Shown here: positions 13,805-32,907 of the stretch, piece after piece
Layout of the letters: every line of letters begins with the position of its first letter
Numbering within the stretch: position 1 is the stretch's first letter
Sequence record: OR844650.1
DNA length: 64,000 bases
Direction: 5' to 3' (one strand)
Notes under the pieces: model-generated
Told to the model about the DNA's origin: nothing
Seen by the model: only the letters and a program-made list of their open reading frames with translations
Database searches by the model: none
Program-made: the position numbers and the translations under genes

Positions 13805-13893
13805 GATAAAACTCCTTAATTTAGGAGGGAGAACCATTTCCCCCTCTCTATGTAAAACATTATACTTGATTCTAAGTACTATGCAAGTACTTT

Positions 13894-14226
13894 TTACATT
13901 TTAATACCTGGATTCAGATAGCGGTGAGAACCATATTCTGGATCGGTTTCGGTCCAGTACTGTAAATCGATAGTACCTTTCGCGTTAATCTTGTCTACCA
14001 GCTTATTCATCTTAGCGTATACTACGTCAGCATCGATGCGTTTAAAGCCAGTAGCTTTAGTGAAGTAGTAGTGATTTGCTTCACTATCATTAAGGATATA
14101 CCGAGCACCGTTTGCAGTCTGTGCGATAATGATTGAGTATTCTACTTCCCGATCCAGACCGTCGATGAATACAGATGAAACATTGGTACGGATGAAAGCT
14201 TTAACGATAGCGATTGAAGTACTCAT
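13894..14226 (-). CDS. Early hypothetical protein
   Basis: 110 aa, AGGAG RBS, own promoter. Confidence 0.8.
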   Translation of the reverse strand: MSTSIAIVKAFIRTNVSSVFIDGLDREVEYSIIIAQTANGARYILNDSEANHYYFTKATGFKRIDADVVYAKMNKLVDKINAKGTIDLQYWTETDPEYGSHRYLNPGIKM

Positions 14227-14329
14227 TTTGAATCTCCTAACTTTGTGGGCCGTCGCACCATTGCCGCCCTACGAGATACATTATTGCAGTACTGATATAC
14301 TTTGTCAATACTTTTTTTATTAATAGTTT

Positions 14330-14415
14330 TCACCCCACCAGCAGATAGTTACTCACCGTTATTAACTATATATTTTAGATACACTCCTGCACCCAGTGGG
14401 CTAGTTTTTGTCTAT
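14330..14415 (-). ncRNA. Putative small RNA or leader, CCCANNGGGTGC family copy A
   Basis: TTGACT-17-TATTAT promoter at 14422-14450, no ORF downstream, GCCCACTGGGTGC at 14389-14401. Confidence 0.4.
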
Positions 14416-14472
14416 GCGTATATAATAGCAAAGGGACTGACCGGAGTCAATCCCTTTTTTTATTCTTTTTTG

Positions 14473-14673
14473 TTAGATGATTCTCCAATCTTCTACGATC
14501 ATGGTAAGATAACGGACCATCGATTCAAGTGATTCGAATTCCCGATAGTCTGCCGCTCCACCAGCGGTACAAGTACAGCCGATTAAACCATTTTGTAATT
14601 CCTTAATCTGTACATCGATAAGGTTGGCTTTAGCTTCTTTCAGTACTTCAACCAGGGCGATAGCGATAGACAT
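14473..14673 (-). CDS. Early hypothetical protein
   Basis: 66 aa behind cassette. Confidence 0.75.
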   Translation of the reverse strand: MSIAIALVEVLKEAKANLIDVQIKELQNGLIGCTCTAGGAADYREFESLESMVRYLTMIVEDWRII

Positions 14674-14762
14674 AATGTTTTACTCCAAACTATTGACGGG
14701 AGAACTATTCCCCCGCTCTATGTAAAACATTATACATTACTTGTTAGTACTGTCAAATAGTT

Positions 14763-15020
14763 TTATGAAATATCTTCGATGTAGTCGGCCCATTTCATTT
14801 TTTCAGTACTGTCAATGGCTACCGGATTATTTGGATCAAACCATTCACCATTACCGCAGTACATACCAACGGCTACGGTTTTATAGCCATCCTGGGCCGT
14901 ACTCCACGACATTGCACGATAGATATGGCCTTTAACTGGTTGCAGTACTGGTAACGTTTTATGGTCTTCTACGTAGGCCATAGCTTGAGGATTTACCCGA
15001 TATTGTGTGAATTGTTCCAT
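14763..15020 (-). CDS. Early hypothetical protein
   Basis: 85 aa, own promoter. Confidence 0.75.
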   Translation of the reverse strand: MEQFTQYRVNPQAMAYVEDHKTLPVLQPVKGHIYRAMSWSTAQDGYKTVAVGMYCGNGEWFDPNNPVAIDSTEKMKWADYIEDIS

Positions 15021-15096
15021 GATGTTTCCCCTTGTAGTTAGTAAAGTTATTACATCAGTACTATCAAGCTATGTCAATAGTACTGAAATAAAACTT

Positions 15097-15321
15097 TTAG
15101 ATTAGATTATTGATGCCGTTGATGGTAGACTCGCTTTCTTCTTTCTCCCATTGGCGGTAGTACTTCCATGCTTCATGATATGTGGCGATTAGTTCATCTT
15201 TTTGATCCTGAGTACATGCCAGTACTGAATCACGGTGAGCGGTGTTATAGATAGAATCGAATGATTTCTTCTCTTCTGCCAGGTTAGCTACTTCCCGCAT
15301 CAGTTCATCAAAGTTAGCCAT
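15097..15321 (-). CDS. Early hypothetical protein (acidic, helical)
   Basis: 74 aa behind cassette. Confidence 0.75.
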   Translation of the reverse strand: MANFDELMREVANLAEEKKSFDSIYNTAHRDSVLACTQDQKDELIATYHEAWKYYRQWEKEESESTINGINNLI

Positions 15322-15388
15322 TTTATTACTCCTTTTAGTGGGGGAGGATATCTCCCCCTATGCAAAACATTATACTTTGTTTTAGTTA

Positions 15389-15652
15389 TTATGCAAGTAC
15401 TTTTTTCATATAAAGATTATATTCTACACCGCCGTAACCTTCTACGATGATATGTTTTGCGTTATCACGTTTGCACATAGTGAAACCGTTGTTGATGTGT
15501 TCTGCATTTTCCAGGGCGACATCACCGATAGCGGCACATACGGCACTAATAACAGTATTCCGCAAAGTACTGGTATCATTAGCGGTCATAGTAGTTTGCA
15601 GTACTACGTTGTCGTATACGTGTGCATTGATAGTGATTTCGATAGTGTTCAT
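15389..15652 (-). CDS. Early hypothetical protein
   Basis: 87 aa, CAGGAG RBS behind cassette. Confidence 0.75.
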   Translation of the reverse strand: MNTIEITINAHVYDNVVLQTTMTANDTSTLRNTVISAVCAAIGDVALENAEHINNGFTMCKRDNAKHIIVEGYGGVEYNLYMKKVLA

Positions 15653-15738
15653 GGTGTATCTCCTGGACTGGCGGGAGAACTATTCCCCCGCTCTATGTAA
15701 AACATTATACGTTAATCTAACTACAATGCAAGTACTTT

Positions 15739-15930
15739 TTAAATTTTATTTCCGATATAGTCCGGTCTATTCTTTTCGGTCATACGCTTTGCTAATGTTT
15801 GCATATGGCTTATTGCGTTTAATGTGTCTTCCTCCAGGGATGAATCAACATAATCAGGATCATTCTTCACCTTGCAATGATTATGATAGCGTAGTACTGC
15901 CAGTACTTTTTTAACTTCTTCTACTGTCAT
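15739..15930 (-). CDS. Early hypothetical protein
   Basis: 63 aa, coupled to upstream gene. Confidence 0.7.
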   Translation of the reverse strand: MTVEEVKKVLAVLRYHNHCKVKNDPDYVDSSLEEDTLNAISHMQTLAKRMTEKNRPDYIGNKI

Positions 15931-16199
15931 AATAAGTACCCCACTTCGTTAGCTTTCAGGTTAGTATCAATCATCAGTGGATTTTTGTAGTTCACAAAAC
16001 GATTAGTTTTCTCGATAGCGAATCCCATATAATCCAGCTTACTAACAGTACATTCATTCTTAAAAACTTCTTTCGCTGCATCGATGGCTGATTGCATGGA
16101 TAACCGACCATCTAAATTAATGTTTCCAAATGATCCACCAGCAGAAGTAGGATTACCGTTCATATCTTTAATGATCATAGTAGCGGAGTAGCTGGACAT
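15927..16199 (-). CDS. Early hypothetical protein
   Basis: 90 aa behind cassette. Confidence 0.75.
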   Translation of the reverse strand: MSSYSATMIIKDMNGNPTSAGGSFGNINLDGRLSMQSAIDAAKEVFKNECTVSKLDYMGFAIEKTNRFVNYKNPLMIDTNLKANEVGYLL

Positions 16200-16286
16200 A
16201 ATTTTGTTTCCTTTTAGTATCGGGGAGAACTATTCTCCCCTTGATGTAAACTATTATACAGTACTGATATACTTTGTCAAATACTT

Positions 16287-16694
16287 TTATTCGCCCATAT
16301 AGATTAGATTATCATCGCCTACATAGGGATCGCAAACGTTGATTTCTTCGCAGTACTTAGTGAATACATCGCCATAGTGACCTAAACCACGATCCCAAAA
16401 ACCAGTTCCGTGACCTTCGCGGGTAAGGAACAGATCATGACCAGCTTGCTCATAACCGTAATCAATAAACATACCGCGAACTACTTCCAGATCATTACCG
16501 TGTTTCTCAATGAAGCGAGAACATGCAATCACCGCCGCTTGACGTGCTTCATCAGATAACTCATAATCTTCCAGGTAATCGCCGTTATCATTATGTACAG
16601 TACTGAATTGCATAGCTTCAATGTAAGCTACAACCATTGCAGCATGATTTTTATCGTTAGTGATGTTCCGAGCGAGATTAGTAGTAGTAGACAT
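16287..16694 (-). CDS. Conserved phage early protein with GHDLFLTREGHGTGFWDR motif
   Basis: Motif recalled from a widespread uncharacterised phage family; behind cassette. Confidence 0.8.
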   Translation of the reverse strand: MSTTTNLARNITNDKNHAAMVVAYIEAMQFSTVHNDNGDYLEDYELSDEARQAAVIACSRFIEKHGNDLEVVRGMFIDYGYEQAGHDLFLTREGHGTGFWDRGLGHYGDVFTKYCEEINVCDPYVGDDNLIYMGE

Positions 16695-16777
16695 GATTTT
16701 ATTCCTTATTGTATTGGGGAGAACTATTCTCCCCTTGATGTAAACTATTATACAGTACTGATATACTTTGTCAATAC

Positions 16778-16999
16778 TTAATTACGTTTAAAATGATATG
16801 TGCCTTTATCATCCTGTACGCCCCACACTGATTTACCATCAACACCAGTGAAACCGGATTGTAATTCAATATGGAAACCATTATTATCAACTACAAAAAC
16901 TTTTTTATTTTCATCCCGATAACATTGATATTCTGAATCAACATTAAAGGCCGCATCATTCAGAAGATTGGAAGCGTAAATGCAAGTCATTGTAGTCAT
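16778..16999 (-). CDS. Early hypothetical protein
   Basis: Start MTTMTC after AAGGAA RBS. Confidence 0.75.
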   Translation of the reverse strand: MTTMTCIYASNLLNDAAFNVDSEYQCYRDENKKVFVVDNNGFHIELQSGFTGVDGKSVWGVQDDKGTYHFKRN

Positions 17000-17094
17000 G
17001 ATTTTATTCCTTATTACCAGGGAGAACCATTTCCCCCTCTCTATGTAAAACATTATACTTGATTCTAAGTACAATGCAAGTACTTTTTATCAAA

Positions 17095-17167
17095 TAGTTT
17101 TCAGTACTGAATACTTATATAATAGATACACTTCCGCACCCTATGGGTCAGTGAGTTATCTCTCAAT
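17095..17167 (-). ncRNA. Putative small RNA or leader, CCCANNGGGTGC family copy B
   Basis: Promoter 17174-17202; ACCCATAGGGTGC at 17136-17148; TGAG-AGATAA-CTCA hairpin. Confidence 0.4.
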
Positions 17168-17220
17168 GAATATATAATAGCAAAGGGACTGACCGGAGTC
17201 AATCCCTTTTTTAATCTTTT

Positions 17221-17805
17221 TTATCGTGTTACCTTACTTGCTTCTACATCACGCTTTTTATAGTACTGATTCCAGATATTGCGGGTTAAACCGTAATCAA
17301 GTACTTTAATAAGGCCGTTGCGATCCTGGCCGATATTCTGTTTTCTGATATCTCTTATCGTTAGTGTTGACAGTGTATCATCAACGTGTTGTAGTGCATC
17401 AGCAAAGCGGTGCTGGCGTTCAATTGCATTACGTTTAATATTGTACTTTAATTCGTTGCACGCGTTAACGTGCTTTACACTGCCTTTACTTGCAGTACTC
17501 AACCGATCCATAACGATAAACATATTATCAGGATCGCATAAATGCATATGCACCTTTGCAAAGTACTGTTTCAATTGAGGGCGGTCATAGTCTAAAAAAT
17601 TCCATACCTTACATTCAGTTTCATTTTGTTCTACACCCGCATCACAATTGGCGACCTTAATCACTAACCGATCATTTAAAGCGAATACAATACGGGAAGA
17701 ACCCGCACCGATGATCTCCAGACCAGCTAACCGACAAGCTGAAAGGATCTCTTTGTTGGTTTCCATTTCTGACAGGGTACGGATGAATTTAGTATAATTA
17801 CGCAT
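17221..17805 (-). CDS. Protein kinase-like (Ser/Thr kinase fold)
   Basis: Gly loop IGAGSSRIV, VIKVA, helix-C Glu, catalytic DIRKQN, DYG; start MRNYTK. Confidence 0.8.
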   Translation of the reverse strand: MRNYTKFIRTLSEMETNKEILSACRLAGLEIIGAGSSRIVFALNDRLVIKVANCDAGVEQNETECKVWNFLDYDRPQLKQYFAKVHMHLCDPDNMFIVMDRLSTASKGSVKHVNACNELKYNIKRNAIERQHRFADALQHVDDTLSTLTIRDIRKQNIGQDRNGLIKVLDYGLTRNIWNQYYKKRDVEASKVTR

Positions 17806-17836
17806 TGCATGTTCTCCTTGAGTTAATGAAACTATC

Positions 17837-18079
17837 TTACAGTACTTTACTATCAATGGCAACCACTTTTTTCACACTAACCGCGTGAATCACTTCCTTA
17901 GTGTTTTTAGTACTGAATACTTTCGCTGTTCCTTGTTCTACTGCAATGCGATAACGACCGTTAACATCAACCATATTAATAAAGTCCGGTGTACTAAACC
18001 GAGTAGTACGGCATTTCAGTACTGTTAACAGTTCCACCAGCGATGTAGTTTCTTTGATACGTTTTTCTAAAGTAATCAT
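17837..18079 (-). CDS. Early hypothetical protein
   Basis: Start MITLEK; upstream region duplicated at 18360-18411. Confidence 0.7.
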   Translation of the reverse strand: MITLEKRIKETTSLVELLTVLKCRTTRFSTPDFINMVDVNGRYRIAVEQGTAKVFSTKNTKEVIHAVSVKKVVAIDSKVL

Positions 18080-18136
18080 TTTGTTTTCCCCGTGTTGGTA
18101 TGTACATATAGTACTAAAACATTTGAGTACTGTCAA

Positions 18137-18355
18137 TTAGATAATTGCATATTTCTTTAAAGATAATGCGTCTTGGGTTGGCTGATACTCAATGCCGTTA
18201 CCGTTATCTACTTTAACTAATAAACCTTTGTCAATTAGTTTTTTAATAGTCCTTTGGCCTTGTTGAAAATTGGTAAAATGTGAATCATTACGAAAGGTAT
18301 AACCGTGCTTAACTGCTTCATCAATAGTTTTCTTTTCGATTTTAGATAATTTCAT
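18137..18355 (-). CDS. Small basic protein, possible winged-helix
   Basis: Start MKLSK; TIKKLIDKGLLVK pattern. Confidence 0.65.
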   Translation of the reverse strand: MKLSKIEKKTIDEAVKHGYTFRNDSHFTNFQQGQRTIKKLIDKGLLVKVDNGNGIEYQPTQDALSLKKYAII

Positions 18356-18408
18356 TTTGTTTCTCCCGTGTTGGTATGTGTACATAATACTAAAACAATT
18401 GAGTACTG

Positions 18409-18663
18409 TCAACGTGATATTAGTTTTATTTTCTTATTATATTGTTGATGTTCATAAAGGTTTATCTTTCCTGTGTTCTCTATTACTATTCTGTTGTTAG
18501 TGTCTACATCGATTACACGCAGTTTTCCGTTGCTTAACTTCCTTGGTAATAGGTTACCATTAATAAACTCATTAGCAAGCTGTACGGCCTTTGTGATGAT
18601 TCTCTGTGGTGCTTTATAGTGTACCCGCAAGATATTATCTTTAGATAGTTGTACCTTAATCAT
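18409..18663 (-). CDS. Possible ParE/RelE-like small basic protein
   Basis: LRVIDV..NRIV...G....YEHQQYNK resembles prophage ParE-like proteins ending in SHExYN (recalled pattern). Confidence 0.45.
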   Translation of the reverse strand: MIKVQLSKDNILRVHYKAPQRIITKAVQLANEFINGNLLPRKLSNGKLRVIDVDTNNRIVIENTGKINLYEHQQYNKKIKLISR

Positions 18664-18725
18664 TTTAGTTTATCCTATAAAAAAGGCGGGAACTGATCCC
18701 GCCGTGTTGTTAGTACTGCAAGTTA

Positions 18726-19130
18726 TTAGATAACCTGGCGGCGTTTACTGTATACTGTTACACGATTACCCTTACGGTCGTGTCGGATCTCTTTCTGGTT
18801 GCGAACCAGTTCACTTGGACGCTTAAGGTTTGCCAGGTGATCCGCGTGAGTCCAAGCGGTATGGTTTGTCTGTACTTTGATATCAGAATCAGCGATAAAT
18901 TCATCTTGTGCGTTAAGTACTGCCGCCAGTAAATCCGCTCGTTTTAGTTCTGCTGCTGTTAGTACTGGCTCCGGTGAATTCACGATATCAGAGATTTCTT
19001 TGAACTGTACGGCCCAGCGTTGACCTTTCGGTGCATCTTTGCCCATGTCTTTAAATGCTGCTCCTTCCTCGCGTGCAACAATACGGGCAGCTTCACGGGT
19101 AGCGTAGAATTTAGTAATCATGGTATACAT
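18726..19130 (-). CDS. Early hypothetical protein, paralogue of 31151-31417
   Basis: ATRE.AR..AR..GA.FKDMG...G.RWA and DRKGNRVTVY shared. Confidence 0.8.
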   Translation of the reverse strand: MYTMITKFYATREAARIVAREEGAAFKDMGKDAPKGQRWAVQFKEISDIVNSPEPVLTAAELKRADLLAAVLNAQDEFIADSDIKVQTNHTAWTHADHLANLKRPSELVRNQKEIRHDRKGNRVTVYSKRRQVI

Positions 19131-19216
19131 CCTATTAGTTGAGTTAGTACTACAAGTTAGAGTCTATTATAAAGTACTATCTGGGCAATGTCAAATAGTA
19201 CTTTAAATGGATTCTA

Positions 19217-19540
19217 TTACATGTCTTTCTTACGTTTTACATCGTAGTAGCGAACTGTTATTTCTTTGTTAATCTCTTTTTCGATGCGGTGAATAACTTT
19301 TTCTTTCGGGTTGAAACCTATAACGGTTTCTTTAATGATCTCCAAGCCCGTGTATTCTCCTTGTGTACCGTAACCGTAAGTAAAGGTTTCATGTCCCAAG
19401 TCTTCCCAGCGGTCGCCAATTAACGCGGACACGTAGCAAGAGTGGTAAGTGTTACCGTTCCGATCAGTCCAGCGATTAACTTTAATGTCAAAGGAGGTTA
19501 CAATTTTCAGTTCTACTTTCTGGGTAAGGATCATAGCCAT
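19217..19540 (-). CDS. Early hypothetical protein, paralogue of 25604-25927
   Basis: RWTDxxGNTYHSC and FTYGY, ends VKRKKD(M/L). Confidence 0.8.
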   Translation of the reverse strand: MAMILTQKVELKIVTSFDIKVNRWTDRNGNTYHSCYVSALIGDRWEDLGHETFTYGYGTQGEYTGLEIIKETVIGFNPKEKVIHRIEKEINKEITVRYYDVKRKKDM

Positions 19541-19627
19541 TTTTATTTCTCTCTCTTTGTTAGGAGGGGAACCATTCCCCTCGCTTGATGTAAACTATTA
19601 TACAGTACTAAGATACTTTGTCAATAC

Positions 19628-19810
19628 TTATTTTTTGGAAAGTTTACGCATTAATTCTACGCTTTCTTGTGAACGTTTTGCTACCTGGCAAGCTGTATGG
19701 GCAGTAAACATTTTTGTATAGTCTGACGCTTTGCCACCAAACCGAGCGGCACGTTCACGGGCACTTGGAACTAATACTATTTCTTTCTTGCAGATAGTGC
19801 ACTTAGCCAT
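19628..19810 (-). CDS. Small Cys/His (Zn-ribbon-like) early protein
   Basis: CxxC ... HxxC. Confidence 0.75.
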   Translation of the reverse strand: MAKCTICKKEIVLVPSARERAARFGGKASDYTKMFTAHTACQVAKRSQESVELMRKLSKK

Positions 19811-19897
19811 TTTAATTTCTCTCTTTTAGTTAGGAGGGGAACCATTTCCCCGCCTTGATGTAAACTATTATACAGTACTAAGATACTTTGTCAATAC

Positions 19898-20173
19898 TTA
19901 AGTATTGTAAATGTCGTGAATAGTGATAAAGTTTTTACGCCCGTAAACCTGTAAATCGGTATTAATGTAGTGCTTATCAAGTACATCCTCGACGCTTAAC
20001 GCGGTGTCGTGAATATCTTCGTAGAATTGGGGATCTACAATCTTGCTTAAGTCATCCGGCGTTAACTTATCGTTAAGCCATTGAACCGCCTGGATATCTG
20101 CATCACGTTTCCATTGTTCCAGGTTAGTAGTCAGTACTTGCTCGATTTCGTTAGCTGTCAGTAGAATCCGCAT
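19898..20173 (-). CDS. Early hypothetical protein
   Basis: 91 aa, own promoter 20207-20234. Confidence 0.75.
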   Translation of the reverse strand: MRILLTANEIEQVLTTNLEQWKRDADIQAVQWLNDKLTPDDLSKIVDPQFYEDIHDTALSVEDVLDKHYINTDLQVYGRKNFITIHDIYNT

Positions 20174-20239
20174 TTTAATGTTTCCTTATCAGTGGTTGAT
20201 GTAAGTATTATACTCGTTTACTTTCTATTGTCAAACTAT

Positions 20240-20317
20240 TTTATCAGGGGAGTTTTTCGTATGTCTTACTCCTGGACTACTTAACGGGGTTACTTGTTTC
20301 GTTCCCCGTCCTGATGT
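20240..20317 (-). ncRNA. Putative two-hairpin small RNA or long leader, copy 1 (copy 2 at 30470-30550)
   Basis: Strong promoter with no RBS/ORF before the next promoter; ACGGGG/CCCCGT stem. Confidence 0.4.
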
Positions 20318-20364
20318 AAAACATTATACTTGATTCTAAGTACAATGCAAGTACTTTTTAAAAA

Positions 20365-20434
20365 TAGTTTTCAGTACTAGCCACCAGCAAACAATAGATA
20401 CATTTATGCACCCTGTGGGCTGATTTGTTTCTAT
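20365..20434 (-). ncRNA. Putative small RNA or leader, CCCANNGGGTGC family copy C
   Basis: Promoter 20441-20469; motif 20408-20420; Chi at 20381. Confidence 0.4.
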
Positions 20435-20487
20435 GCGTATATAATAGCAAAGGGACTGACTGGAGTCAATCCCTTTTTCAAATATTT

Positions 20488-20637
20488 TTAAACTTCTTTC
20501 GGGTTGCGATAGGTGATAGCGTTCGGGTACATTTGTTTAATGTTATTCCATGCCTGGTTAACATTATAACCACTTGAGCGAATCAGTTGGTTACTACCGA
20601 CACCTTGAAACACTACTTCGAATAAGAATTCTTTCAT
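20488..20637 (-). CDS. Small early protein (49 aa, MKEFLFEVVF...)
   Basis: Hand translation; ATGA-coupled to upstream gene. Confidence 0.65.
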   Translation of the reverse strand: MKEFLFEVVFQGVGSNQLIRSSGYNVNQAWNNIKQMYPNAITYRNPKEV

Positions 20638-20807
20638 GCTTTCACCTCGCTATCTGCTTTACCTTTACGCCAGGACATTACTAATTGTTCGCGTTGCCAT
20701 AAGTCGAGTGATACAAAAAGTTTTGCGGTATCACTTTTAGGATACTCGCCATTAGTACCTAACCGATAAAATAGATCTTTCAGTACTGATAATTCTACTT
20801 GGATCAT
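20634..20807 (-). CDS. Small early protein
   Basis: Start MIQVELS behind cassette. Confidence 0.7.
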   Translation of the reverse strand: MIQVELSVLKDLFYRLGTNGEYPKSDTAKLFVSLDLWQREQLVMSWRKGKADSEVKA

Positions 20808-20893
20808 TATACTTTCCTTTTTGTTAGGAGGGGAACTATTCCCCTCTCGATATAAAACATTATACACTTTATTCAGTACTGTGCAAGTACTTT

Positions 20894-21106
20894 TTAATCT
20901 TTCAGCCAATGATCTTGGATGAATTTTTCACCGAAGCCTTGCTGCATGGATTGTAACAGTCGTTCACGGTGAGCGGCGGCAAATTGCTCAGTACTATGCG
21001 TTACACCTGGTTGATAACGTGATTCACCATTGGGGGCGATGTATTGTACATCCCACGGTTTAGCGTTAGTATCAGACCATTTACGAACGATTAGTTGACC
21101 TTGCAT
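20894..21106 (-). CDS. Early hypothetical protein
   Basis: Start MQGQ after GAGGA. Confidence 0.7.
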   Translation of the reverse strand: MQGQLIVRKWSDTNAKPWDVQYIAPNGESRYQPGVTHSTEQFAAAHRERLLQSMQQGFGEKFIQDHWLKD

Positions 21107-21193
21107 TTTTCTTTCCTCAGTACTGGGGAGAATCATTTCTCCCCTTCATGTAACTTATTATACAGTACTATAATCTATTGTCCAGTACTTTTT

Positions 21194-21382
21194 TTACAGT
21201 TTATGAATCAATTCTTTATCTAAGCGATAGCGTACATTATTAATGGTAACAGCATTATTTTTAATGCTACGCTGTACTGGCCCACCAGCAATAACAAACG
21301 TTGCCTTATTACCCCGAACAATAATAGCACTTCCTGGATTGCTGTATTCATCTTGTACTAAAATACTTGATAAGTTTTCCAT
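21194..21382 (-). CDS. Early hypothetical protein
   Basis: 62 aa behind cassette. Confidence 0.7.
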   Translation of the reverse strand: MENLSSILVQDEYSNPGSAIIVRGNKATFVIAGGPVQRSIKNNAVTINNVRYRLDKELIHKL

Positions 21383-21463
21383 TTTTATTTCCTCTTAGTA
21401 GGGGAAGACGTTTCCCCTTGATGCAATACAGTATACACTATCTTTCAGTACTTTCAATACTTT

Positions 21464-21721
21464 TTATCTCATAGATCTATGCCAACAATTACGCGGATCT
21501 CTTTTAAAAGTACTATCATGATCCTCCTGGCAAGTTATGCAGTACTTACATCCCTTAACAGCCTGGCGGCGATTCTCAGGGATTTTATCGCCACAGTCGA
21601 GGCAATGTATCAGTGATTCTATTTGTGCGTTAATTTGCTTTCTAGCGTGGTTTACGGCGGCCTGAATCACTGCGTTAATCTCGTCTTGTTCGGCCCCGTC
21701 TTTCGCGAATCCGACAGCCAT
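21464..21721 (-). CDS. TraR/DksA C4 zinc-finger protein (YbiI-like)
   Basis: MAVGFAKDGAEQDEIN N-terminus, CLDCGDKIPENRRQAVKGCKYCITCQ. Confidence 0.9.
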   Translation of the reverse strand: MAVGFAKDGAEQDEINAVIQAAVNHARKQINAQIESLIHCLDCGDKIPENRRQAVKGCKYCITCQEDHDSTFKRDPRNCWHRSMR

Positions 21722-21918
21722 TATTTTAACCTTTTTCTATCATTAATTAATGCTTTCAGTACTATACTAATAACTTGCAATGATTCATCAATAACTATAA
21801 AATTATTTTCTTTCATTAGATGATAGTTACCATTGATATTATATTCTAACGAGTACTGTTTACGTTTAATTTTTGATAATGTTTCTATTTGTTTTTGTAC
21901 TGATTTCATGCTAATCAT
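21721..21918 (-). CDS. Early hypothetical protein
   Basis: 65 aa. Confidence 0.65.
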   Translation of the reverse strand: MISMKSVQKQIETLSKIKRKQYSLEYNINGNYHLMKENNFIVIDESLQVISIVLKALINDRKRLK

Positions 21919-21987
21919 TGGTAAACGTCCTGTAACGCATTCTAACGAGATAAACGGTTGAGTACTGACATTGTATAGGGTAATGAA

Positions 21988-22017
21988 TTAAAGCCCACCA
22001 GCGTTAACCAGTGGGCT
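21988..22017 (-). terminator. Intrinsic terminator (AGCCCAC/GTGGGCT stem) containing a Chi site
   Basis: Stem followed by short U tract on minus strand. Confidence 0.55.
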
Positions 22018-22167: not shown

Positions 22168-22266
22168 TTTATTTCTCTCTTAGGTTAAGTTAACTACTGT
22201 TGATAAAACTTATTATACAGTACTATCAAACGTTGTCAATATCTTTAATAGTACTGGTAATATATT

Positions 22267-22446: not shown

Positions 22447-22529
22447 TTTTTAATTCCTTAGTAGTGTAGTTGATAAAAGTTATTATGTCAGTACTATCAA
22501 ACTATGTCAATAGTACTGTGATAATATTT

Positions 22530-22742
22530 TTAGTTAATGATAGTCAGTGTAAAATTGTAATCACCGCAGCGATATAGCACGTTATTCCCAAATGTTCCAA
22601 CTAATCGCACATCACACAAAACGCCGGTTTTTTCTTTTACTTCCTTGATACTTGTAACTCCTGTAATATCTTTATTAAAGTATTCATGATCTGAAAATAA
22701 AACTTGTTTTGCATTTTTTAATTTCGACCGGATATTAGCCAT
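22530..22742 (-). CDS. Early hypothetical protein
   Basis: 70 aa behind cassette. Confidence 0.75.
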   Translation of the reverse strand: MANIRSKLKNAKQVLFSDHEYFNKDITGVTSIKEVKEKTGVLCDVRLVGTFGNNVLYRCGDYNFTLTIIN

Positions 22743-22838
22743 TTTGTTTTCTCTCTCTGTTAGTGGGGAGAACTATTCTCCCCTTGATGTAAACTATTAT
22801 ACAGTACTATAATCTATTGTCAAACTATTTTTTTTATA

Positions 22839-23180: not shown

Positions 23181-23262
23181 GATTTGTTTCCTTATTATCA
23201 GGGGAAACCGTTTCCCCTTTCGATGTAAAACATTATACGCTTATCAGGAAGTAATGCAAGTA

Positions 23263-23730
23263 CTATTTCACGTTAATTTCAAAGTACTGCTCTTTGATGT
23301 TTTCCTGTTGGTAAATCTCGTTTAATGCTTTAAGATCTAAAACCTGTTTACCTGCTGCCTGAATATACTTTTTAAGAGTCGCTAACAGCTTCTCAGGCGT
23401 GTTTGTAGTCTTACGTGTTGGGATCTTATCGTGCCCCATAGCGTAGTACTGCTTACGTGCTATAGTACTGATAACACTGCGGTACGGTTCCATGATCAGC
23501 TTGTCTGTGTATTCGTCGCTATCCCCAAACTTCATACCGTGGATCGCAAAGGTCATCATCATGCGGTCGTTATCGCGGATATTGTGGGGGCAGTCGGCAA
23601 GCTCGCGAGTCAGTGACATAGTGATCCCCACGTCGCCACCCAGCGGTAAAGGTCGGGCGATAAAGAAACCGTTAGGGAATACTTTCAGGAAGTTTTCTTG
23701 AACTGCTGCGACGAATTCGATGCTATTCAT
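23263..23730 (-). CDS. Early hypothetical protein
   Basis: 155 aa behind cassette. Confidence 0.8.
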   Translation of the reverse strand: MNSIEFVAAVQENFLKVFPNGFFIARPLPLGGDVGITMSLTRELADCPHNIRDNDRMMMTFAIHGMKFGDSDEYTDKLIMEPYRSVISTIARKQYYAMGHDKIPTRKTTNTPEKLLATLKKYIQAAGKQVLDLKALNEIYQQENIKEQYFEINVK

Positions 23731-23834
23731 AATTCATTTCCTTAATTAGTGGGGGAAGTTGTTTCCCCTCTCGATGTAAAACATTATACGCCAATTGAGA
23801 TAGTTTGCAAGTACTTTCTACAAATACTATTAAA

Positions 23835-23908: not shown

Positions 23909-23952
23909 GAATATATAATAGCAAAATGGCTGACCGGAGTCAACCACTTTTT

Positions 23953-24335: not shown

Positions 24336-24416
24336 TTTGATTCTCCTGTTATTGGGGAGAATCATTTCTCCCCTTCATGTAAACTATTATACAGTACTGA
24401 AAACTAATTGCAAGTA

Positions 24417-24659
24417 TTATTTTAAACTTTGTGCGACTAATTTCGCACGGTCAATCATATACTGCCATTTTTGGATCTCTTCTGGAAGAAAACGATATTC
24501 ACCAATAACAATAGTGATACACTTTTCAGCCTGGTCAATGTATGTAGTATCAATCTCGACTTGAACGGGTACACGTTCGCCGTAATCAGTGCCAGGGATA
24601 ATACAATCATTATCATAAGTAACAGTAGTTGCAGTGTCTTTGATTAAAATGGTTTCCAT
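24417..24659 (-). CDS. Early hypothetical protein
   Basis: Start METIL after GAGGA. Confidence 0.7.
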   Translation of the reverse strand: METILIKDTATTVTYDNDCIIPGTDYGERVPVQVEIDTTYIDQAEKCITIVIGEYRFLPEEIQKWQYMIDRAKLVAQSLK

Positions 24660-24729
24660 TATACTTTCCTCGTTAGGTGTAAGGGGAAAAAGTTTCCCCT
24701 CTATGTAAACAATTATACAGTACTGAAAA

Positions 24730-24939
24730 CTAATTGCAAGTACTATTTGAAAGTAAATGCTCATACGCTGCATTAACTACGTTTTCAATAACCGACTGTA
24801 CAGAAAGATTCCCCACGTCCTGGCTATAGTAGAAATCGCTTACAGTGGTGTCATCGTATGCAAATACTTTACCAGGTACGGCATCAATCACATACATATT
24901 AACCTTTAAGATGTCGATCTTATCCTGTACAGTAAGCAT
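24730..24939 (-). CDS. Early hypothetical protein
   Basis: 69 aa. Confidence 0.6.
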   Translation of the reverse strand: MLTVQDKIDILKVNMYVIDAVPGKVFAYDDTTVSDFYYSQDVGNLSVQSVIENVVNAAYEHLLSNSTCN

Positions 24940-25927: not shown

Positions 25928-26016
25928 TTTTGTATTCCTTAAATTAATATGTTGTCTTGATAAAATCTATTATGCCAGTACTATCAAACTATGTCAATAG
26001 TACTGTGATAATATTT

Positions 26017-26160
26017 TTACTTACTTTTTGCTTTCTTTACTGCTTCCACCTGGTCGGCCCACTCTTTACCCCATACTTGTAAATTATAATGGTACTGGCA
26101 AAGTGCAACGCCCCGCTTTAAACCAGTAATAGATTTTTTACCACATTGACAAGTTTTCAT
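26017..26160 (-). CDS. Small Cys/His early protein (47 aa, MKTCQCGKK...)
   Basis: Hand translation; CxC...CxxH; behind cassette. Confidence 0.65.
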   Translation of the reverse strand: MKTCQCGKKSITGLKRGVALCQYHYNLQVWGKEWADQVEAVKKAKSK

Positions 26161-26246
26161 ATTAGTTTCCTCATTATCAGGGAGAACCATTTCTCCCCTT
26201 GATGTAATGTATTATACTTTATCTGATTTACTTTGCAAGTACTTTT

Positions 26247-26474: not shown

Positions 26475-26711
26475 TGTTTTGATTCCTTTGATTTGGAAGG
26501 AGAACCGTTTCCCCCTCTCGATGTAAAACATTATACGCTAATCTCTTAATCGTGCAAGTACTTTTTATTACTTTTTGCAAAATACTTTAAACGCTCTCAA
26601 TCGCATTCTAACGACCTTAACGCCACCAGCTAGGGCGATGCATCAGATAATCAGTTTAATGCGTTAGAATCGATTCTAGGCGGTGCTGGTGGCCTGGTAA
26701 ACGATAAACAC

Positions 26712-27241: not shown

Positions 27242-27446
27242 TTTATAAATCCTCAATTAAAGTTTAGTTTACGTTTATTAGTGTATCAAAGTTTTCTCGA
27301 CGTGTCCAGTTTTTCGTTCGACTTACTGGCGGTCTACTTAGTGCTCCCCGTCTTGATGTAATACATTCTACGCTTTTCTGCGGTAATGTCAACTACTTTT
27401 TTAAAACTATTTTCAAAGTATCTCAGTACTACGATACTACAAAAAC

Positions 27447-28027: not shown

Positions 28028-28111
28028 TTGATTATCCTTAGTTACCAGGGGGAACCGCTCCCCCTTGCGATGTAAAATATTATACAGTACTAAAAACTAT
28101 TATCAAGTACT

Positions 28112-28348
28112 TTATGATTTTTTATAAAACATTTCAGCAGTGATATTTTTACCCGTTGGCTGTACTTTATCCAGAATTTTTTGATGCCCTGGCCGTCCAA
28201 ATGAATATGATCCGTAAACCGTAAACCAGTAGTTACCCTCAGTGTTTACATGTACAGCACAATAGGGAACGCCCCGCGATTCATCACTAGTAAAGTGTGC
28301 TACCGTTCCCGTTACATTCGAAGACGTTGATTTGATTTGTTCGACCAT
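28112..28348 (-). CDS. Early hypothetical protein
   Basis: 78 aa behind cassette. Confidence 0.7.
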   Translation of the reverse strand: MVEQIKSTSSNVTGTVAHFTSDESRGVPYCAVHVNTEGNYWFTVYGSYSFGRPGHQKILDKVQPTGKNITAEMFYKKS

Positions 28349-28491
28349 TTTCTTATTCCTTAGTTACCAGGGGAACCGCTCCCCCTATGCAAAACATTAT
28401 ACGCGTTTAAAAACTAATTGCAAGTATTTTAATAAAAAGTATTTGAAAAATAGTTGTTGACAAGTGCATCCAGTACTGGCATAATTACTAC

Positions 28492-28600
28492 ATCAAGACG
28501 AAACAGTCACTAACCCACCGGGTGCCGAGATCCGTCTATTAAATGATTCAGTACTGAAAAAGTAACGGGGAGTTATTATCTCCCCGCGTTGTTATTTTGT
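28492..28600 (+). ncRNA. Putative plus-strand small RNA, CCCANNGGGTGC family copy G
   Basis: TTGACA-17-CATAAT at 28457-28485, motif 28513-28525, CGGGGAG/CTCCCCG hairpin 28566-28586; no ORF. Confidence 0.5.
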
Positions 28601-28813: not shown

Positions 28814-28900
28814 TTTATTTTCCTCATTACCAGGGAGAACCATTTCCCCCCTCTATGTAAACCATTATACAGTACTGAAAACTAATTGCAAGTACTTTTT

Positions 28901-29403: not shown

Positions 29404-29461
29404 TAGATAAACCCTCAATAAAGGCGGGAACCATTCCCCGCCATTGTTACAGTACTGAATA

Positions 29462-29701: not shown

Positions 29702-29793
29702 TTTTTTTAATCCTCGTTTGAGCGGGGAACCACTCCCCGCCTCGATATAAAGTATTATACGCCTTTAAACTTAGTTTGCAAGTACTTTTTAAA

Positions 29794-30405
29794 TTAATAT
29801 TCGATTGATTCTACTACACCATCAATGACATTGAATTGATATTCGTTACCCTCAATCAGTGCCGTAATGTTTTCAGTAGTGAATTGATCCTCATATGCAT
29901 TCTCTAAATCACGGTACAACTTGCGGGACAATTCACGAATAGTGTCAGTGAGTAGTTCCTCAAGCTCATTAACTAACGTTTCTTGTTTTGCGGTTAAATC
30001 AGTGTAAGCCGATTCAATGTACCCGCTTACAGTGTTCTCATGCGAGTAGTGGGAGTGAGAACGCTTTACACTCATCGCCAAATCATCTTCATTCAGCAAG
30101 TGACGGATTGAGCGATACTTAGTTAATGCTCTTACCTTGCGTAAAAACTTCACTGCGTCAACGTGGTCAGTACTGATTGATGCACCGTCACCCTGGGACC
30201 AAAAACCACTGAATTGTATTTCAGCGTCATTAATGCCATATTCCGGTAGTACTGTTTCTTTATAGTATTCAATTTCACTTTCAGAAAAATAATCATCGTT
30301 TAAGTTTTTTTCACGTTCCCGAACCAGTTCGATAGCTGACGTTTTTTGTTCTGCGTTCAATTCAGAAAAATCCATAACGAAAGTAGTAGTAGTGATAGTT
30401 TTCAT
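29794..30405 (-). CDS. Acidic conserved phage early protein (FSGFWSQGDGAS motif)
   Basis: 203 aa, Glu/Asp-rich; motif recalled from a widespread phage family. Confidence 0.8.
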   Translation of the reverse strand: MKTITTTTFVMDFSELNAEQKTSAIELVREREKNLNDDYFSESEIEYYKETVLPEYGINDAEIQFSGFWSQGDGASISTDHVDAVKFLRKVRALTKYRSIRHLLNEDDLAMSVKRSHSHYSHENTVSGYIESAYTDLTAKQETLVNELEELLTDTIRELSRKLYRDLENAYEDQFTTENITALIEGNEYQFNVIDGVVESIEY

Positions 30406-30469
30406 TTTGTAACTCTCATTCAGTAGTTGATGTAAGTATTATACGCTTTTAAAAACATTTGTCAAACTA

Positions 30470-30550
30470 TTTTATCAGGGGAGTTTTTCGTGTGCCTTAC
30501 TCCTGGGCTACTTAACGGGGAGTTACTTATTTCGTTCCCCGTCCTGATGT
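30470..30550 (-). ncRNA. Putative two-hairpin small RNA or long leader, copy 2
   Basis: Near-identical to 20240-20317; ACGGGGA/TCCCCGT stem. Confidence 0.4.
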
Positions 30551-30664
30551 AAAACATTATACGCCTTTAAACATAGTTTGCAAGTACTTTTTAAAAATAG
30601 TTTTCAGTACTGAATATTAAAAAAAAGTATTGACAGCATTATCAAGTACTGGCATAATATACCC

Positions 30665-30767
30665 CATGACAACAGCTAACCCACCGGGTGCACAATTGTA
30701 ACTGTAATAAACTACTTTTTCTATAGATACACTCCCGCACCCTATGGGCTACGGCTTATCTGCCAAT
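30665..30767. ncRNA. Convergent pair of motif-bearing transcripts (copy H plus, copy E minus)
   Basis: Plus promoter 30630-30658 with motif 30679-30691; minus promoter 30774-30802 with motif 30737-30749. Confidence 0.45.
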
Positions 30768-30832
30768 GAATACATTATGCCAGTACTGACAAAATAAGTC
30801 AATACCGGCAATTGTAAAGATTTGTAAACTGC

Positions 30833-31063
30833 TTATACTGCAATCGCGTCCAGGCTATAATAATAATAAGTGCCGTATTGGTGTACTTTATTACCTTTTA
30901 TTTCAGTACTGAATGAATCCGAACGGTTTGCATATGATGTTAATTTAAAGTACTTTGATTTGCTGATACGTTGCCATACACCGCAGATCCGCTGTAAGTA
31001 AGTAGTTTTATTCGTGGTAGTATCTTTTACGGTTTTAACTTCAGTCATATACATATTAGTCAT
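30833..31063 (-). CDS. Early hypothetical protein
   Basis: 76 aa behind cassette. Confidence 0.7.
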   Translation of the reverse strand: MTNMYMTEVKTVKDTTTNKTTYLQRICGVWQRISKSKYFKLTSYANRSDSFSTEIKGNKVHQYGTYYYYSLDAIAV

Positions 31064-31150
31064 TTTTATTACTCCAGGTTATAGGCGGGATGTGTTCCCG
31101 CTCTAGATGTAAAACATTATACGCCATTAAACATAGTTTGCAAGTACTTT

Positions 31151-31417
31151 TTATTCAAGTACTGCAATCTTTTTAGTACGGTACACGGTCACGCGGTTGC
31201 CCTTTCGGTCGAGCTTTATTTCTACCACTCGACGCGATACACTATCGGGACTTTTTAAGGCCGCTAACCAGTACTGTAATGATCTGGCTGTACTACGCTT
31301 TACAATGGCCCAACGTTCACCACTTGCCGATCCCGCACCCATATCTTTAAACGTTGCCCCGTCCTGGCGAGCGGCGATCCGAGCTTGTTCACGCGTCGCA
31401 AAATACTTAATATTCAT
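31151..31417 (-). CDS. Early protein, paralogue of 18726-19130
   Basis: Start MNIKY. Confidence 0.75.
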   Translation of the reverse strand: MNIKYFATREQARIAARQDGATFKDMGAGSASGERWAIVKRSTARSLQYWLAALKSPDSVSRRVVEIKLDRKGNRVTVYRTKKIAVLE

Positions 31418-31500
31418 GCTGTTGCCCTTATCGTTGGTGTATGAATAAAACACTATTATAAAGTACTATCACCGTGCAATAGTACTTTAAATAAATTCTA

Positions 31501-31740
31501 TTACATTCCAACCATCGCCGCACGGATCGCAGTAGTGCTATATTTGAATCCGTCCGGTGTTTTATCTTGTCCAGTCTGTTCTAAAAATAGCATCATATGA
31601 CGGGCCGCATCATTGCGATTAGTGCTATCGTTAATAAAGTCCTGGGCCAACCGGTACAATGATTCATCGTTATTAATCCAAAGGCTTACATTCCAATGAG
31701 TTTTGTTTTTGTGACCTAAGAACATTTTTGATTTTGCCAT
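31501..31740 (-). CDS. Early protein, paralogue of 29462-29701
   Basis: Start MAKSK after GAGGA. Confidence 0.8.
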   Translation of the reverse strand: MAKSKMFLGHKNKTHWNVSLWINNDESLYRLAQDFINDSTNRNDAARHMMLFLEQTGQDKTPDGFKYSTTAIRAAMVGM

Positions 31741-31823
31741 TTTTTTTAATCCTCTTATATAGTGGGGAACTATTCCCCACCTGATGTAAAACATTATACG
31801 CTTTTAAACTTAGTTTGCAAGTA

Positions 31824-32057
31824 CTATTTTTTCAGTACTGGTAAACCTTTGATCTCACCTGGCTGTACTTCCTCAAAGGCGACCGCCATCATACGGCTAT
31901 CATCTTCCTTACATTCTTCCATCGCATCACAAAAATGATTAATAACGTCCGGTGCAACGTCAACCACATCAAACAAGCCAACCTCAGTGCAACGGCTTAA
32001 AGCGTTTAATAGGTCAGTCAGTGCAACGGATTGAGAAACAGTTAAAATAGTACTCAT
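31824..32057 (-). CDS. Early hypothetical protein
   Basis: 77 aa behind cassette. Confidence 0.7.
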   Translation of the reverse strand: MSTILTVSQSVALTDLLNALSRCTEVGLFDVVDVAPDVINHFCDAMEECKEDDSRMMAVAFEEVQPGEIKGLPVLKK

Positions 32058-32151
32058 AAAATTAATCTCTTAATTTTAGTGGGGAACTATTCCCCACCTG
32101 ATGTAAAACATTATACGCCATTAAACATAGTTTGCAAGTACTTTATTAAAC

Positions 32152-32514
32152 TTATTTGTAAATTTTGCCACTGTCAGCCCATACCAGGAAACGAGGCATA
32201 TTATCCCATGCATCTTGTTTTAAGTTTAAGCCGTGCAATTCCTCAGTTGTTGCCATCCCTGGTACTGGCTTACTACACACCGCGAAATTTTCGCCCATGT
32301 ACTGATAAACCATCGTCAAATCATTTGAGATCATTACATGGATCATTGAATCAAGCATCAAAGTAGCGGCGTATTGTTCACGCTTAAGCGGCAACATTGC
32401 AATAAGTTCCCGATAAGCTGCAATGTGAATTTTTACAGTTTCAGCCGGAAGACCTTTCATCTCTTCGCGGAAGTTTACCAGGTTAAGCATGATTTTAGTG
32501 ATTTGAGTCGCCAT
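32152..32514 (-). CDS. Early hypothetical protein
   Basis: Start MATQI behind cassette. Confidence 0.75.
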   Translation of the reverse strand: MATQITKIMLNLVNFREEMKGLPAETVKIHIAAYRELIAMLPLKREQYAATLMLDSMIHVMISNDLTMVYQYMGENFAVCSKPVPGMATTEELHGLNLKQDAWDNMPRFLVWADSGKIYK

Positions 32515-32907
32515 CGTTTTAATCTCTCTTAATGTGTAGCGGGAAGTGTTCCCGCTCTCGATGTAAAACATTATACGCCTTTAAACATAGTTTGCAAGTA
32601 CTTTCTACATGTACTTTTAAAATAGTTTTCTTTCTATATAGGGGAACTATCATTCAGTACTGCAACCATCCAGGGGAACTATCTTTCTATATAGGAGTAC
32701 TATTATTCAGTACTGAATCAACCAAATCACTACTACACCCCGTAAAACGGCCTCAGACGCATTCTAACGCATTAATACACCTAAGCTATACATTTGCACC
32801 ATTCCAATCATTCCAGGGCTTTACGGGCCGTTTAAACGCGTTAAATTATTTTCAATTATTTTGTTTTTAGGTATTGACTTGATCCTGAAAAAGCGTATAA
32901 TTACTAC

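Follow-up and report, generated by a model that had tools for sequence, protein, structure and literature searches.

The closest described counterparts of the elements considered here are the PeSL (early promoter and stem-loop) cassettes of T4-type phages, known from RB49/phi1, PST/T4 and nt-1/KVP40 (PMC2839356, PMC4122927), whose stem-loop, placed ahead of the promoter or within it, terminates transcription arriving from upstream (PMC2839356; PMC4122927). A second precedent is provided by the Rak2-like jumbo phages CBB and GAP32, which have RpoD-like early promoters, 18 of them listed (PMC5259590). Here we describe a family of promoter cassettes in the final 64 kb of the 352-kb sequence record OR844650.1, a stretch referred to below as the window. 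A sequence-only reading of this DNA had proposed some 28 PeSL-like cassettes, one per gene, with covarying stems that protect mRNA 5′ ends and with a capacity for modular shuffling. The explanation that we regard as the best overall, and as somewhat probable, is that these are early promoter cassettes with a cis-acting RNA hairpin in the leader, and that they also act as recombination substrates.

By its sequence matches the source is an Asteriusvirus-type jumbo phage of Escherichia coli of about 352 kb (121Q/PBECO4 group): in a megablast search, window positions 13,800–22,000 matched Escherichia phage ECO103 4-12-1 (351,992 bp) at 100% and were 88–97% identical to 121Q, G17, Sharanji, ph0011, fEgEco12 and other Asteriusvirus jumbo coliphages. 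The genes between 1 and 39.3 kb are on the minus strand, and the cassettes are therefore to be read on that strand. All of the cassettes are contained in a segment, 12,972–34,247 (no strand assigned), that corresponds by homology to the direct terminal repeat (DTR) of related phages; the G17 record starts at window position 12,973, the stretch 1–21,525 of vB_Ec-M-J, annotated as ‘Direct Terminal Repeats’, corresponds to window 34,247–12,971, and GC content is 0.38–0.40 within the segment versus 0.30–0.35 in its flanks. Because of these mappings, and of the terminal repeats of fEgEco12 (20,993 bp, confirmed by PhageTerm and restriction digests; PMC13070987) and Sharanji (20,668 bp), the cassette zone can be equated with a DTR of approximately 21.3 kb whose limits in OR844650.1 are inferred by homology, a coincidence that the sequence-only reading had missed. 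Transcription of the DTR is directed inward from one genome end; its genes are mostly hypothetical, with approximately 53 annotated in the zone in relatives, and beyond it small genes are tightly packed, without spacers and without cassettes.

A strict pattern search yielded 22 minus-strand promoters, from which a position weight matrix (PWM) was made; with a site threshold score of >12, this matrix identifies 34 sites in the window, every one of them on the minus strand and lying between 13,847 and 33,890, and no sites in 20 shuffles of the window. An independent repeat finder recovers the same cassette families (D1–D6). In the whole 352-kb record, 34 of the 38 PWM matches are in the DTR-equivalent 6% of the genome and the remaining four are weak, and six relatives have 29–34 equivalent cassettes apiece, in the same place, within approximately 20 kb and always on the coding strand. 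The earlier estimate of about 28 was thus too low, and the zone had been closed too soon at 32,598, as there is another cassette beyond it (33,843–33,890).

Along the minus strand a cassette consists of an A-rich stretch, AGTAC, the -35 box, a 16-nt spacer, TATAAT and (G/A)TTTTACAT, followed in most copies by a hairpin, about 10 nt, a Shine-Dalgarno sequence (SD) and the ATG; the predicted order of sigma-70-type early promoter, stem-loop and ribosome-binding site (RBS) is borne out. Among the 34 cassettes the -35 box is TTGCAA in 13, TTGACA in ten, TTGCAT in five and another sequence in six; ten sites have a perfect TTGACA/TATAAT and 13 combine TTGCAA/TATAAT, a 16-nt spacer and an upstream flank rich in A, so that on their sequence the promoters are of a near-consensus sigma-70 (host RNA polymerase) type. 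In 27 of the 34 there is a hairpin with a stem of 6–9 bp and a loop of 3–5 nt, its 5′ arm rich in purines and its 3′ arm in pyrimidines; among the other seven, three have a long-loop hairpin within a structured leader of about 75 nt, three are hairpin-less, and the last has a hairpin of another kind and no open reading frame (ORF). Each cassette is followed by one small gene or by several in a short run, and the cassettes would serve as the phage's immediate-early promoters, driving these small early genes. The proposal of one cassette for each gene is too strong, since relatives have about 53 genes in the zone, some of them with other promoter types or with no promoter.

The position of the hairpin is fixed. 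There are 29 hairpins of the cassette type in the 64 kb, 26 of them 8–15 nt past a -10 (all 26 promoter-linked copies, with a mode of 12 nt) and none outside the DTR, and the 64-kb hairpin scan found none at promoter-less gene junctions; the hairpin is thus tied to promoters and not to gene ends. It ends 17–25 nt ahead of the ATG within a predicted 5′ untranslated region of 40–49 nt, its predicted folds range from -9 to -16 kcal/mol, and the SD and ribosome site are unpaired. With a predicted transcription start 7–8 nt past the -10, about five unpaired nucleotides would precede the stem in most copies, and between one and six once additional pairs are included.

Comparison of the window with the six relatives (seven genomes, 225 cassettes) shows how the stems have varied. 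A hairpin is present in 172 of the cassettes, in 60 distinct versions with 39 distinct stems, and all 39 stems are perfectly paired, whereas after permutation of the 3′ arms perfect stems number 3.4 on average and ten at most. A MAFFT alignment of whole cassettes (A1) was dropped as unsuitable for column counts because its stems are out of register, and two loop-anchored gapless alignments (A4 and A5) were used instead; in these 91.7% and 91.4% of cells are paired, compared with 79.1% and 83.1% in shuffles (none of 500 reached the observed value) and 55–72% when partners are slid (55–68% for the first alignment). Both sides have changed in six of the nine stem pairs, and the covariation claimed from the window alone is upheld, with counts above both shuffles and slides. 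Because the hairpin finder itself required pairing and the cassettes are paralogues, the shuffle, slide and orthologue tests carry more weight than the raw percentage of pairing. Among orthologous cassettes there are 0.010 substitutions per site in the -10, 0.03 in stems, 0.05 in coding sequence, 0.07–0.08 in leader flanks and 0.10 in loops, such that stems evolve about three times more slowly than loops, and pairing is kept in 38 orthologue stem changes and broken in 11.

The changes are also strand-specific: internal G.T (G.U) pairs outnumber A.C pairs by 23 to three, and when the 60 hairpins were compared the sense strand gave the better fold in 35 of the 38 that differ. These two asymmetries together imply a constraint on the sense strand, that is, on the RNA, and the sequence comparison thereby indicates selection on the hairpin at the sense RNA level. 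They also bear on a DNA-level explanation, in which the inverted repeat would act in duplex or single-stranded form, whether as the operator of a dimeric repressor, as a cruciform or hotspot of recombination, or as a hairpin promoter like those of N4, used by a phage polymerase. A palindromic repeat adjoining promoters invites such a view, as do the location of recombination junctions in or near the hairpin, the mapping of an RB49 crossover to a PeSL loop (PMC2839356), and the abundance in the DTR of a second palindrome, AGTACT. However, a stem whose sequence changes while pairing stays is ill-suited to a sequence-specific operator, and the 23:3 asymmetry constrains the sense strand only; the operator reading was rejected on these two counts. 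N4-type promoters consist of a template-strand hairpin used by the virion polymerase independently of sigma-70 boxes, whereas here the wobble asymmetry points to the sense (non-template) strand and a full sigma-70 promoter is located ahead of every hairpin, and this version was rejected as well. We regard a DNA-level role of any of these kinds as highly improbable.

A PeSL-type attenuator deserves separate consideration, in which the hairpin would mainly stop or damp upstream transcription or block 3′ exonucleases for the benefit of the upstream mRNA, as proposed for RB49/phi1; PeSL stem-loops likewise have a G-run and a C-run without an obvious T-run, and one of them cut lacZ expression to much the same extent as rrnB T1 (PMC2839356). 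The head-to-tail packing of the cassettes, with only about ten canonical terminators in 21 kb, would also suit such a role. A terminator scan did find approximately ten separate terminators on the DTR minus strand, but it called none of the promoter-linked cassette hairpins, none of which is followed by a T-run, and the only cassette-type hairpin that it called belongs to a promoter-less half cassette; a reading as intrinsic (Rho-independent) terminators was rejected for these reasons. Moreover, hairpin cassettes are found right after true terminators (at 17087, 23818, 26565 and 28431), and the one at 32605 precedes the first DTR gene with non-coding DNA upstream, places where there is nothing to stop. 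The lack of T-runs and the cassettes directly past true terminators argue that the hairpins are not terminators of the PeSL type, and their location after terminators and non-coding DNA supports a role in the cassette's own transcript. Since the hairpin is inside that transcript it would attenuate it equally, and the gene junctions that lack promoters are also without hairpins. An attenuator is therefore improbable.

The second property of the cassettes is their association with gene gain and loss. Gene order is colinear in all six relatives, which differ by indels and replacements only, so that the part of the modular-shuffling proposal that stands is gain, loss and replacement of single genes, and reordering does not. 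We identified 48 distinct homology breakpoints in the DTRs of the seven genomes, and 28 of these lie within 7 nt of a cassette, against an expectation of 17% (p ~1e-10). Nine distinct indels of a gene plus a cassette have 45–103 nt of junction homology, and at the two junctions examined in detail the single cassette of the relatives combines the upstream flank of the upstream copy with the downstream flank of the downstream copy; the half cassette at 29,442–29,423 is another junction mark. Exact shared runs of 30–59 nt are present in 16 cassette pairs, including the 59-bp identity of 16222–16280 with 16716–16774 noted in the sequence-only reading, which is exact. As direct repeats of 60–100 bp with exact runs of up to 59 bp, the cassettes would be substrates for homologous recombination, which could delete, insert or swap a single gene and leave one chimeric cassette behind; we consider it likely that they act in this way.

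Exchange may extend further, as a module consisting of structured leader, gene and next cassette is shared with the unrelated, 146-kb Justusliebigvirus muut (window 19,855–20,358 versus muut 5,550–6,060), and includes a 91-aa gene whose product starts MRILLTANE. We note that other early promoters of muut have leader hairpins too, of different sequence. Recent transfer was also considered for the indel gene at 16287–16694, and tblastn gave no evidence for it; the gene belongs to a wide phage family whose nearest relatives outside Asteriusvirus have 39% identity.

What the hairpin does is a matter for more cautious interpretation. It would work in cis, as RNA, within the cassette's own 40–49 nt leader, and the leader would form a module through which all early mRNAs share one 5′ structure and have an open ribosome site, irrespective of the gene downstream; a stabilising and insulating role of this sort is our tentative reading. 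The simpler idea that the hairpin protects the 5′ end is doubtful as it was put, because RppH and RNase E need two unpaired 5′ nucleotides and prefer three or more (PMC8833179) and the leaders are predicted to offer about five, so that classic end protection is not assured. An RNase E ‘scanning obstacle’ was not used as support for a role, as in the cited work simple stem-loops are bypassed (PMC9943677).

Several points weigh against the interpretation that we prefer. For RppH and RNase E two or three unpaired 5′ nucleotides are enough (PMC8833179), fewer than the roughly five predicted for most leaders, and simple stem-loops are bypassed by RNase E (PMC9943677). Three cassettes do not have any hairpin, the fixed spacing could come in part from common descent of paralogous cassettes, and the literature searched contains no transcription start sites or RNA data for the genus. 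Intergenic breakpoints at cassettes are partly expected, because only indels that spare genes survive, and indels relative to 121Q number 16 per 21.3 kb in the DTR and 12 per 18.7 kb in the cassette-free flanks. Finally, the DTR limits of this isolate are those predicted from homology.

The main rival to a stabilising or insulating leader is a common recognition handle, bound by an RNA-binding protein or endoribonuclease of phage or host, through which translation, processing or shut-off of all terminal-repeat mRNAs would be coordinated. The top of the stem is nearly invariant (GAA..UUC, with G5-C17 and A8-U14 invariant), loops are biased to UAG, UGG, CGG, AUGG and ACGG, and the distance from hairpin to ribosome site is constant, all of which favour such a handle; the predicted unpaired nucleotides also speak against pure end protection (PMC8833179), and a DksA-like factor and a kinase-like protein among the early genes suggest dedicated control of host machinery. 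On the other hand, no part evolves faster than the loops (0.10 substitutions per site), several of which (CAC, ACAAC, ATATC) are unrelated, the lower stem varies freely in sequence, no candidate binding protein was identified, and comparable hairpins follow the early promoters of an unrelated phage family, that of muut. We think a handle rather unlikely. An extension of it, which we consider unlikely, is that the hairpin, perhaps together with AGTACT, is the cis-code of a phage-specific regulon; by reading the hairpin on all terminal-repeat mRNAs, or AGTACT on their DNA, a dedicated phage factor may control the timing, processing or silencing of all the immediate-early genes, and the repeats themselves would make every early gene exchangeable as a module, even between phage families. 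A scan of 12–36 kb against Rfam at permissive E-values gave only four sub-threshold chance matches.

We describe the individual cassettes in order of increasing coordinate; all are on the minus strand, and scores are those of the PWM. Cassette 1 (13805–13894; TTGCAT; score 32.9) has its hairpin at 13825–13846, with a stem of 9 bp and a loop of 4 nt, and is followed by an ATG at 13804. Cassette 2 (14674–14764; TTGACA; score 37.5) has a 9-bp stem and 3-nt loop at 14696–14716, with a fold of -13.0 kcal/mol (z -2.7), and cassette 3 (15322–15404; TTGCAT; score 31.1), whose unit is missing from 121Q, a 7-bp stem and 5-nt loop at 15340–15358. In cassette 4 (15653–15739; TTGCAT; score 32.6) the 9-bp stem at 15671–15691 includes one G.U, and in orthologues a C-G pair is replaced by A-T. 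Cassettes 5 (16200–16288; hairpin 16222–16240; score 53.3) and 6 (16695–16782; hairpin 16716–16734; score 43.9) both have TTGACA and share the 59-bp core; they bracket the gene at 16287–16694, which is absent from 121Q, Turkey5 and SD-6. Cassette 7 (17000–17087; TTGCAT; hairpin 17019–17038; score 31.0) lies 95 nt past an intrinsic terminator at 17209–17182.

Cassettes 8 (19541–19632; TTGACA; hairpin 19564–19582, stem 8, loop 3; score 47.3) and 9 (19811–19902; TTGACA; hairpin 19836–19851; score 41.8) bracket a 60-aa gene absent from 121Q, and a promoter nearly identical to that of cassette 9 is found in muut. Cassette 10 (20174–20242; TTGACA; score 21.6), with a short leader and no hairpin, is the second of two tandem promoters for the gene at 19898–20173, next to cassette 11 (20243–20358; TTGCAT; score 32.1), whose structured leader of about 75 nt (type A) has a long-loop hairpin and a second helix with compensatory changes. 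Cassette 12 (20808–20894; TTGCAC; score 31.9) has an 8-bp stem and 3-nt loop at 20828–20846. The upstream edge of cassette 13 (21107–21192; TGGACA; hairpin 21125–21144; score 42.1) adjoins a 349-bp insertion in G17, ph0011 and SD-6, and at cassette 14 (21383–21465; hairpin 21400–21418; score 25.4), with a weaker TTGAAA/TATACT promoter, relatives have an insertion of about 400 bp. No stem was found in cassette 15 (22168–22247; TTGACA; score 33.0), which is hairpin-less, and cassette 16 (22743–22831; TTGACA; hairpin 22765–22783; score 48.6) folds with a z of -3.2.

Cassette 17 (23181–23267; TTGCAT; hairpin 23200–23218; score 34.9) is the downstream partner in a unit indel at 23268/23724, and cassette 18 (23731–23818; TTGCAA; hairpin 23752–23768; score 50.2) comes after the terminator at 23950–23923; the gene at 23263–23730 and one cassette are missing from all six relatives, with a junction overlap of 90–96 nt. 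All relatives have a breakpoint at 24423, beside cassette 19 (24336–24421; TTGCAA; hairpin 24354–24373; score 51.1). Cassette 20 (24660–24747; TTGCAA; score 51.5) has a 9-bp stem and 3-nt loop at 24681–24701, and cassette 21 (26161–26246; TTGCAA; score 39.6) a hairpin with an outer G.U pair at 26179–26198. Cassette 22 (26475–26565; TTGCAC; hairpin 26496–26517; score 37.2) follows the terminator at 26737–26717 and has a breakpoint at 26487/26517. The type B structured leader, again about 75 nt, belongs to cassette 23 (27242–27400; TTGACA/TAGAAT; score 28.8), and has conserved motifs and one covarying helix in common with type A. Cassette 24 (28028–28114; TTGATA; hairpin 28047–28065; score 49.3) is involved in a unit indel at 28114/28387 relative to 121Q; cassette 25 (28349–28431; TTGCAA; score 45.5), after the terminator at 28587–28565, has its hairpin (28368–28387) just 8 nt past the -10, and the hairpin of cassette 26 (28814–28899; TTGCAA; 28832–28851; score 56.2) contains two G.U pairs that are A-U in orthologues.

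The half cassette (29423–29442) has a hairpin and SD without a PWM promoter, and its 5′ edge is a homology break relative to G17 and 121Q. Cassette 27 (29702–29789; TTGCAA; hairpin 29721–29741; score 54.6) has a C-G pair replaced by T-A in orthologues. Cassette 28 (30406–30473; TTGACA; score 32.2), hairpin-less and with a short leader, is the second tandem promoter of the gene at 29794–30405, and adjoins cassette 29 (30474–30591; TTGCAA; score 58.3), the second copy of the type A structured leader, with 86–88% identity to 20189–20378. Cassette 30 (31064–31151; TTGCAA; score 57.1) has a 6-bp stem and 5-nt loop at 31085–31101 (fold z -2.9). Cassettes 31 (31741–31828; TTGCAA; hairpin 31761–31781; score 56.9), the downstream partner in a unit indel at 31825/32062, and 32 (32058–32145; TTGCAA; hairpin 32078–32098; score 57.1) are replaced by a single chimeric cassette in G17, 121Q and ph0011. 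Cassette 33 (32515–32605; hairpin 32538–32556; score 57.5; fold z -4.3) is the first gene-linked cassette in the DTR, and upstream of it there is only non-coding DNA and a terminator at 32993–32974. Cassette 34 (33816–33890; TTGACT; score 31.0), with a different and longer hairpin and no ORF, is in the 1.7-kb non-coding start of the DTR.

The structured leaders of about 75 nt follow three promoters on the minus strand (20,243–20,320, 30,474–30,553 and 27,282–27,356) and are of two sequence types, which share the single-stranded motifs UAAGUAG, GUAAG and CGAAAAAC and one helix with a compensatory change from GG/CC to CC/GG; two of the three are followed by a second, hairpin-less promoter before the gene, and none has an Rfam match in the 12–36 kb scan. 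Promoters outside the PWM class are found at 15,037–15,103, 22,470–22,536, 25,957–26,023, 18,076–18,168 and 18,352–18,444; one such class has 8-bp inverted repeats, AGTACTAT/ATAGTACT, around the -35, as in phage Munch, and some indel junctions are located in these AGTACTAT/ATAGTACT-type promoter repeats.

The palindrome AGTACT (often CAGTACTG) is the commonest hexamer in the DTR, with 141 sites in 21.3 kb versus about seven expected from base composition, and genome-wide OR844650 has 919 sites, approximately 7.6 times the expectation, with a peak at window 12,972–39,400; such strong over-representation of a palindrome is unusual. The sites are in all three reading frames and in spacers, and in many cassettes overlap the -35 and abut the -10. 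The palindrome likewise ranks first among hexamers in the repeat of 121Q and in the promoter zone of Munch, a distant Salmonella phage, but does not do so in muut.

The first 1.7 kb or so of the DTR (32,606–34,247) is non-coding and rich in CAGTACTG sites; it contains the terminator at 32,993–32,974, the ORF-less long-hairpin promoter at 33,816–33,890 and about 12 tandem copies of the 8-mer TAGCCGTC at 33,341–33,439, and could be an origin, packaging or end-recognition region. The DTR genes include a DksA/TraR-type zinc-finger protein (minus strand, 21,464–21,721; Pfam E 1e-11) and a protein-kinase-like protein (minus strand, 17,221–17,862), the latter a weak match under the Pfam cut-off that is annotated as a kinase in relatives; host-takeover functions are plausible for both. 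In the DTR flanks at 6,900–12,900 and 34,550–39,340 the minus strand has long runs of packed or overlapping ORFs of 60–90 aa, and off-diagonal matches together with frequent indels between relatives suggest that these are tandem paralogue families. Beyond them, on the plus strand at 39,426–57,211, there are 15 consecutive ORFs of 245–439 aa with positive GC skew, the first being the counterpart of 121Q gp248, which is annotated as RCC1-like.

These cassettes provide a concrete map of immediate-early transcription units, tied to the terminal repeat, in a group of poorly understood coliphages of approximately 350 kb that have been proposed for therapy, and the compact combination of promoter, hairpin and open RBS is a natural insulated expression unit of interest to synthetic biology. 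Elements of the arrangement have parallels elsewhere. The pre-early region of phage T5 has host-polymerase promoters and many small takeover genes in a direct terminal repeat, present in two copies per virion DNA, and we know of no description of T5 promoters with a conserved leader hairpin. The present locus similarly has host-polymerase promoters and small genes in a direct terminal repeat (for the context of T5 see PMC7472727). However, the lineages are unrelated, and there is no evidence here of a two-step DNA transfer. For mRNA leaders, 5′-terminal stem-loops that stabilise mRNA in E. coli, in the ompA and papA leaders, were reportedly described by Emory, Bouvet and Belasco in 1992 (listed in PMC3997798), and in the leader of T7 gene 10 a purine-rich arm at the start pairs with a pyrimidine-rich one. 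Like these, the cassette leaders combine a short, stable hairpin close to the 5′ end with an unstructured ribosome site after it; unlike the ompA-type stabilisers, whose hairpins are 0–1 nt from the 5′ end, they are predicted in most copies to have about five unpaired nucleotides, enough under present rules for access by RppH and RNase E (PMC8833179).

The CBB and GAP32 promoters are similar in their consensus -35 and -10, UP-like element and clustering before short hypothetical genes, and some were placed on the terminal repeat of about 22 kb of a related jumbo phage (PMC5259590); here the repeat by itself contains 34 and the leader structure is conserved, whereas that report mentions no hairpin, covariation or role in indels (PMC5259590). 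The literature that we searched on Asteriusvirus, 121Q, PBECO4, phAPEC6 and RaK2 contained nothing beyond the generic RpoD-like promoters of CBB, and for Asteriusvirus described no leader hairpins, covariation or cassette-bounded indels.

A PeSL layout in the strict sense does occur in four DTR elements on the minus strand (14,457–14,422, 17,209–17,174, 20,476–20,441 and 23,950–23,915), in which the -35 (TTGACT) lies within a 12-bp terminator hairpin and an extended -10 (TG-n-TATTAT) comes next; each of these composite elements precedes a conserved non-coding stretch of about 100 nt. The cassettes themselves resemble PeSL in having a strong sigma-70-like early promoter with A/T-rich DNA upstream, a stem-loop of a G-run and a C-run, an SD and an ATG, in being repeated, within variable regions, ahead of small genes whose function is unknown, and in the single-gene indels between relatives that leave one hybrid cassette, as described by Arbiol et al. 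(PMC2839356). They differ in that the stem-loop is at a fixed site past the -10 in its own leader, whereas PeSL stem-loops vary in position and lie upstream of, inside or overlapping the promoter; in the RNA-strand-specific covariation; and in their confinement to the terminal repeat, PeSL cassettes being scattered over several hyperplastic regions. The likeness to PeSL proposed from the sequence alone is thus apt for recombination, with indel breakpoints at cassettes and a chimeric remnant, and fails for the position and likely function of the stem-loop. We therefore view the cassettes as a variant of the PeSL idea, undescribed for the genus in the searched literature, which carries the notion of regulatory repeats that serve as handles for the recombinational exchange of single genes beyond the T4-type phages: the recombination behaviour is the same, and the stem-loop is used differently, at the RNA level and within a terminal repeat.

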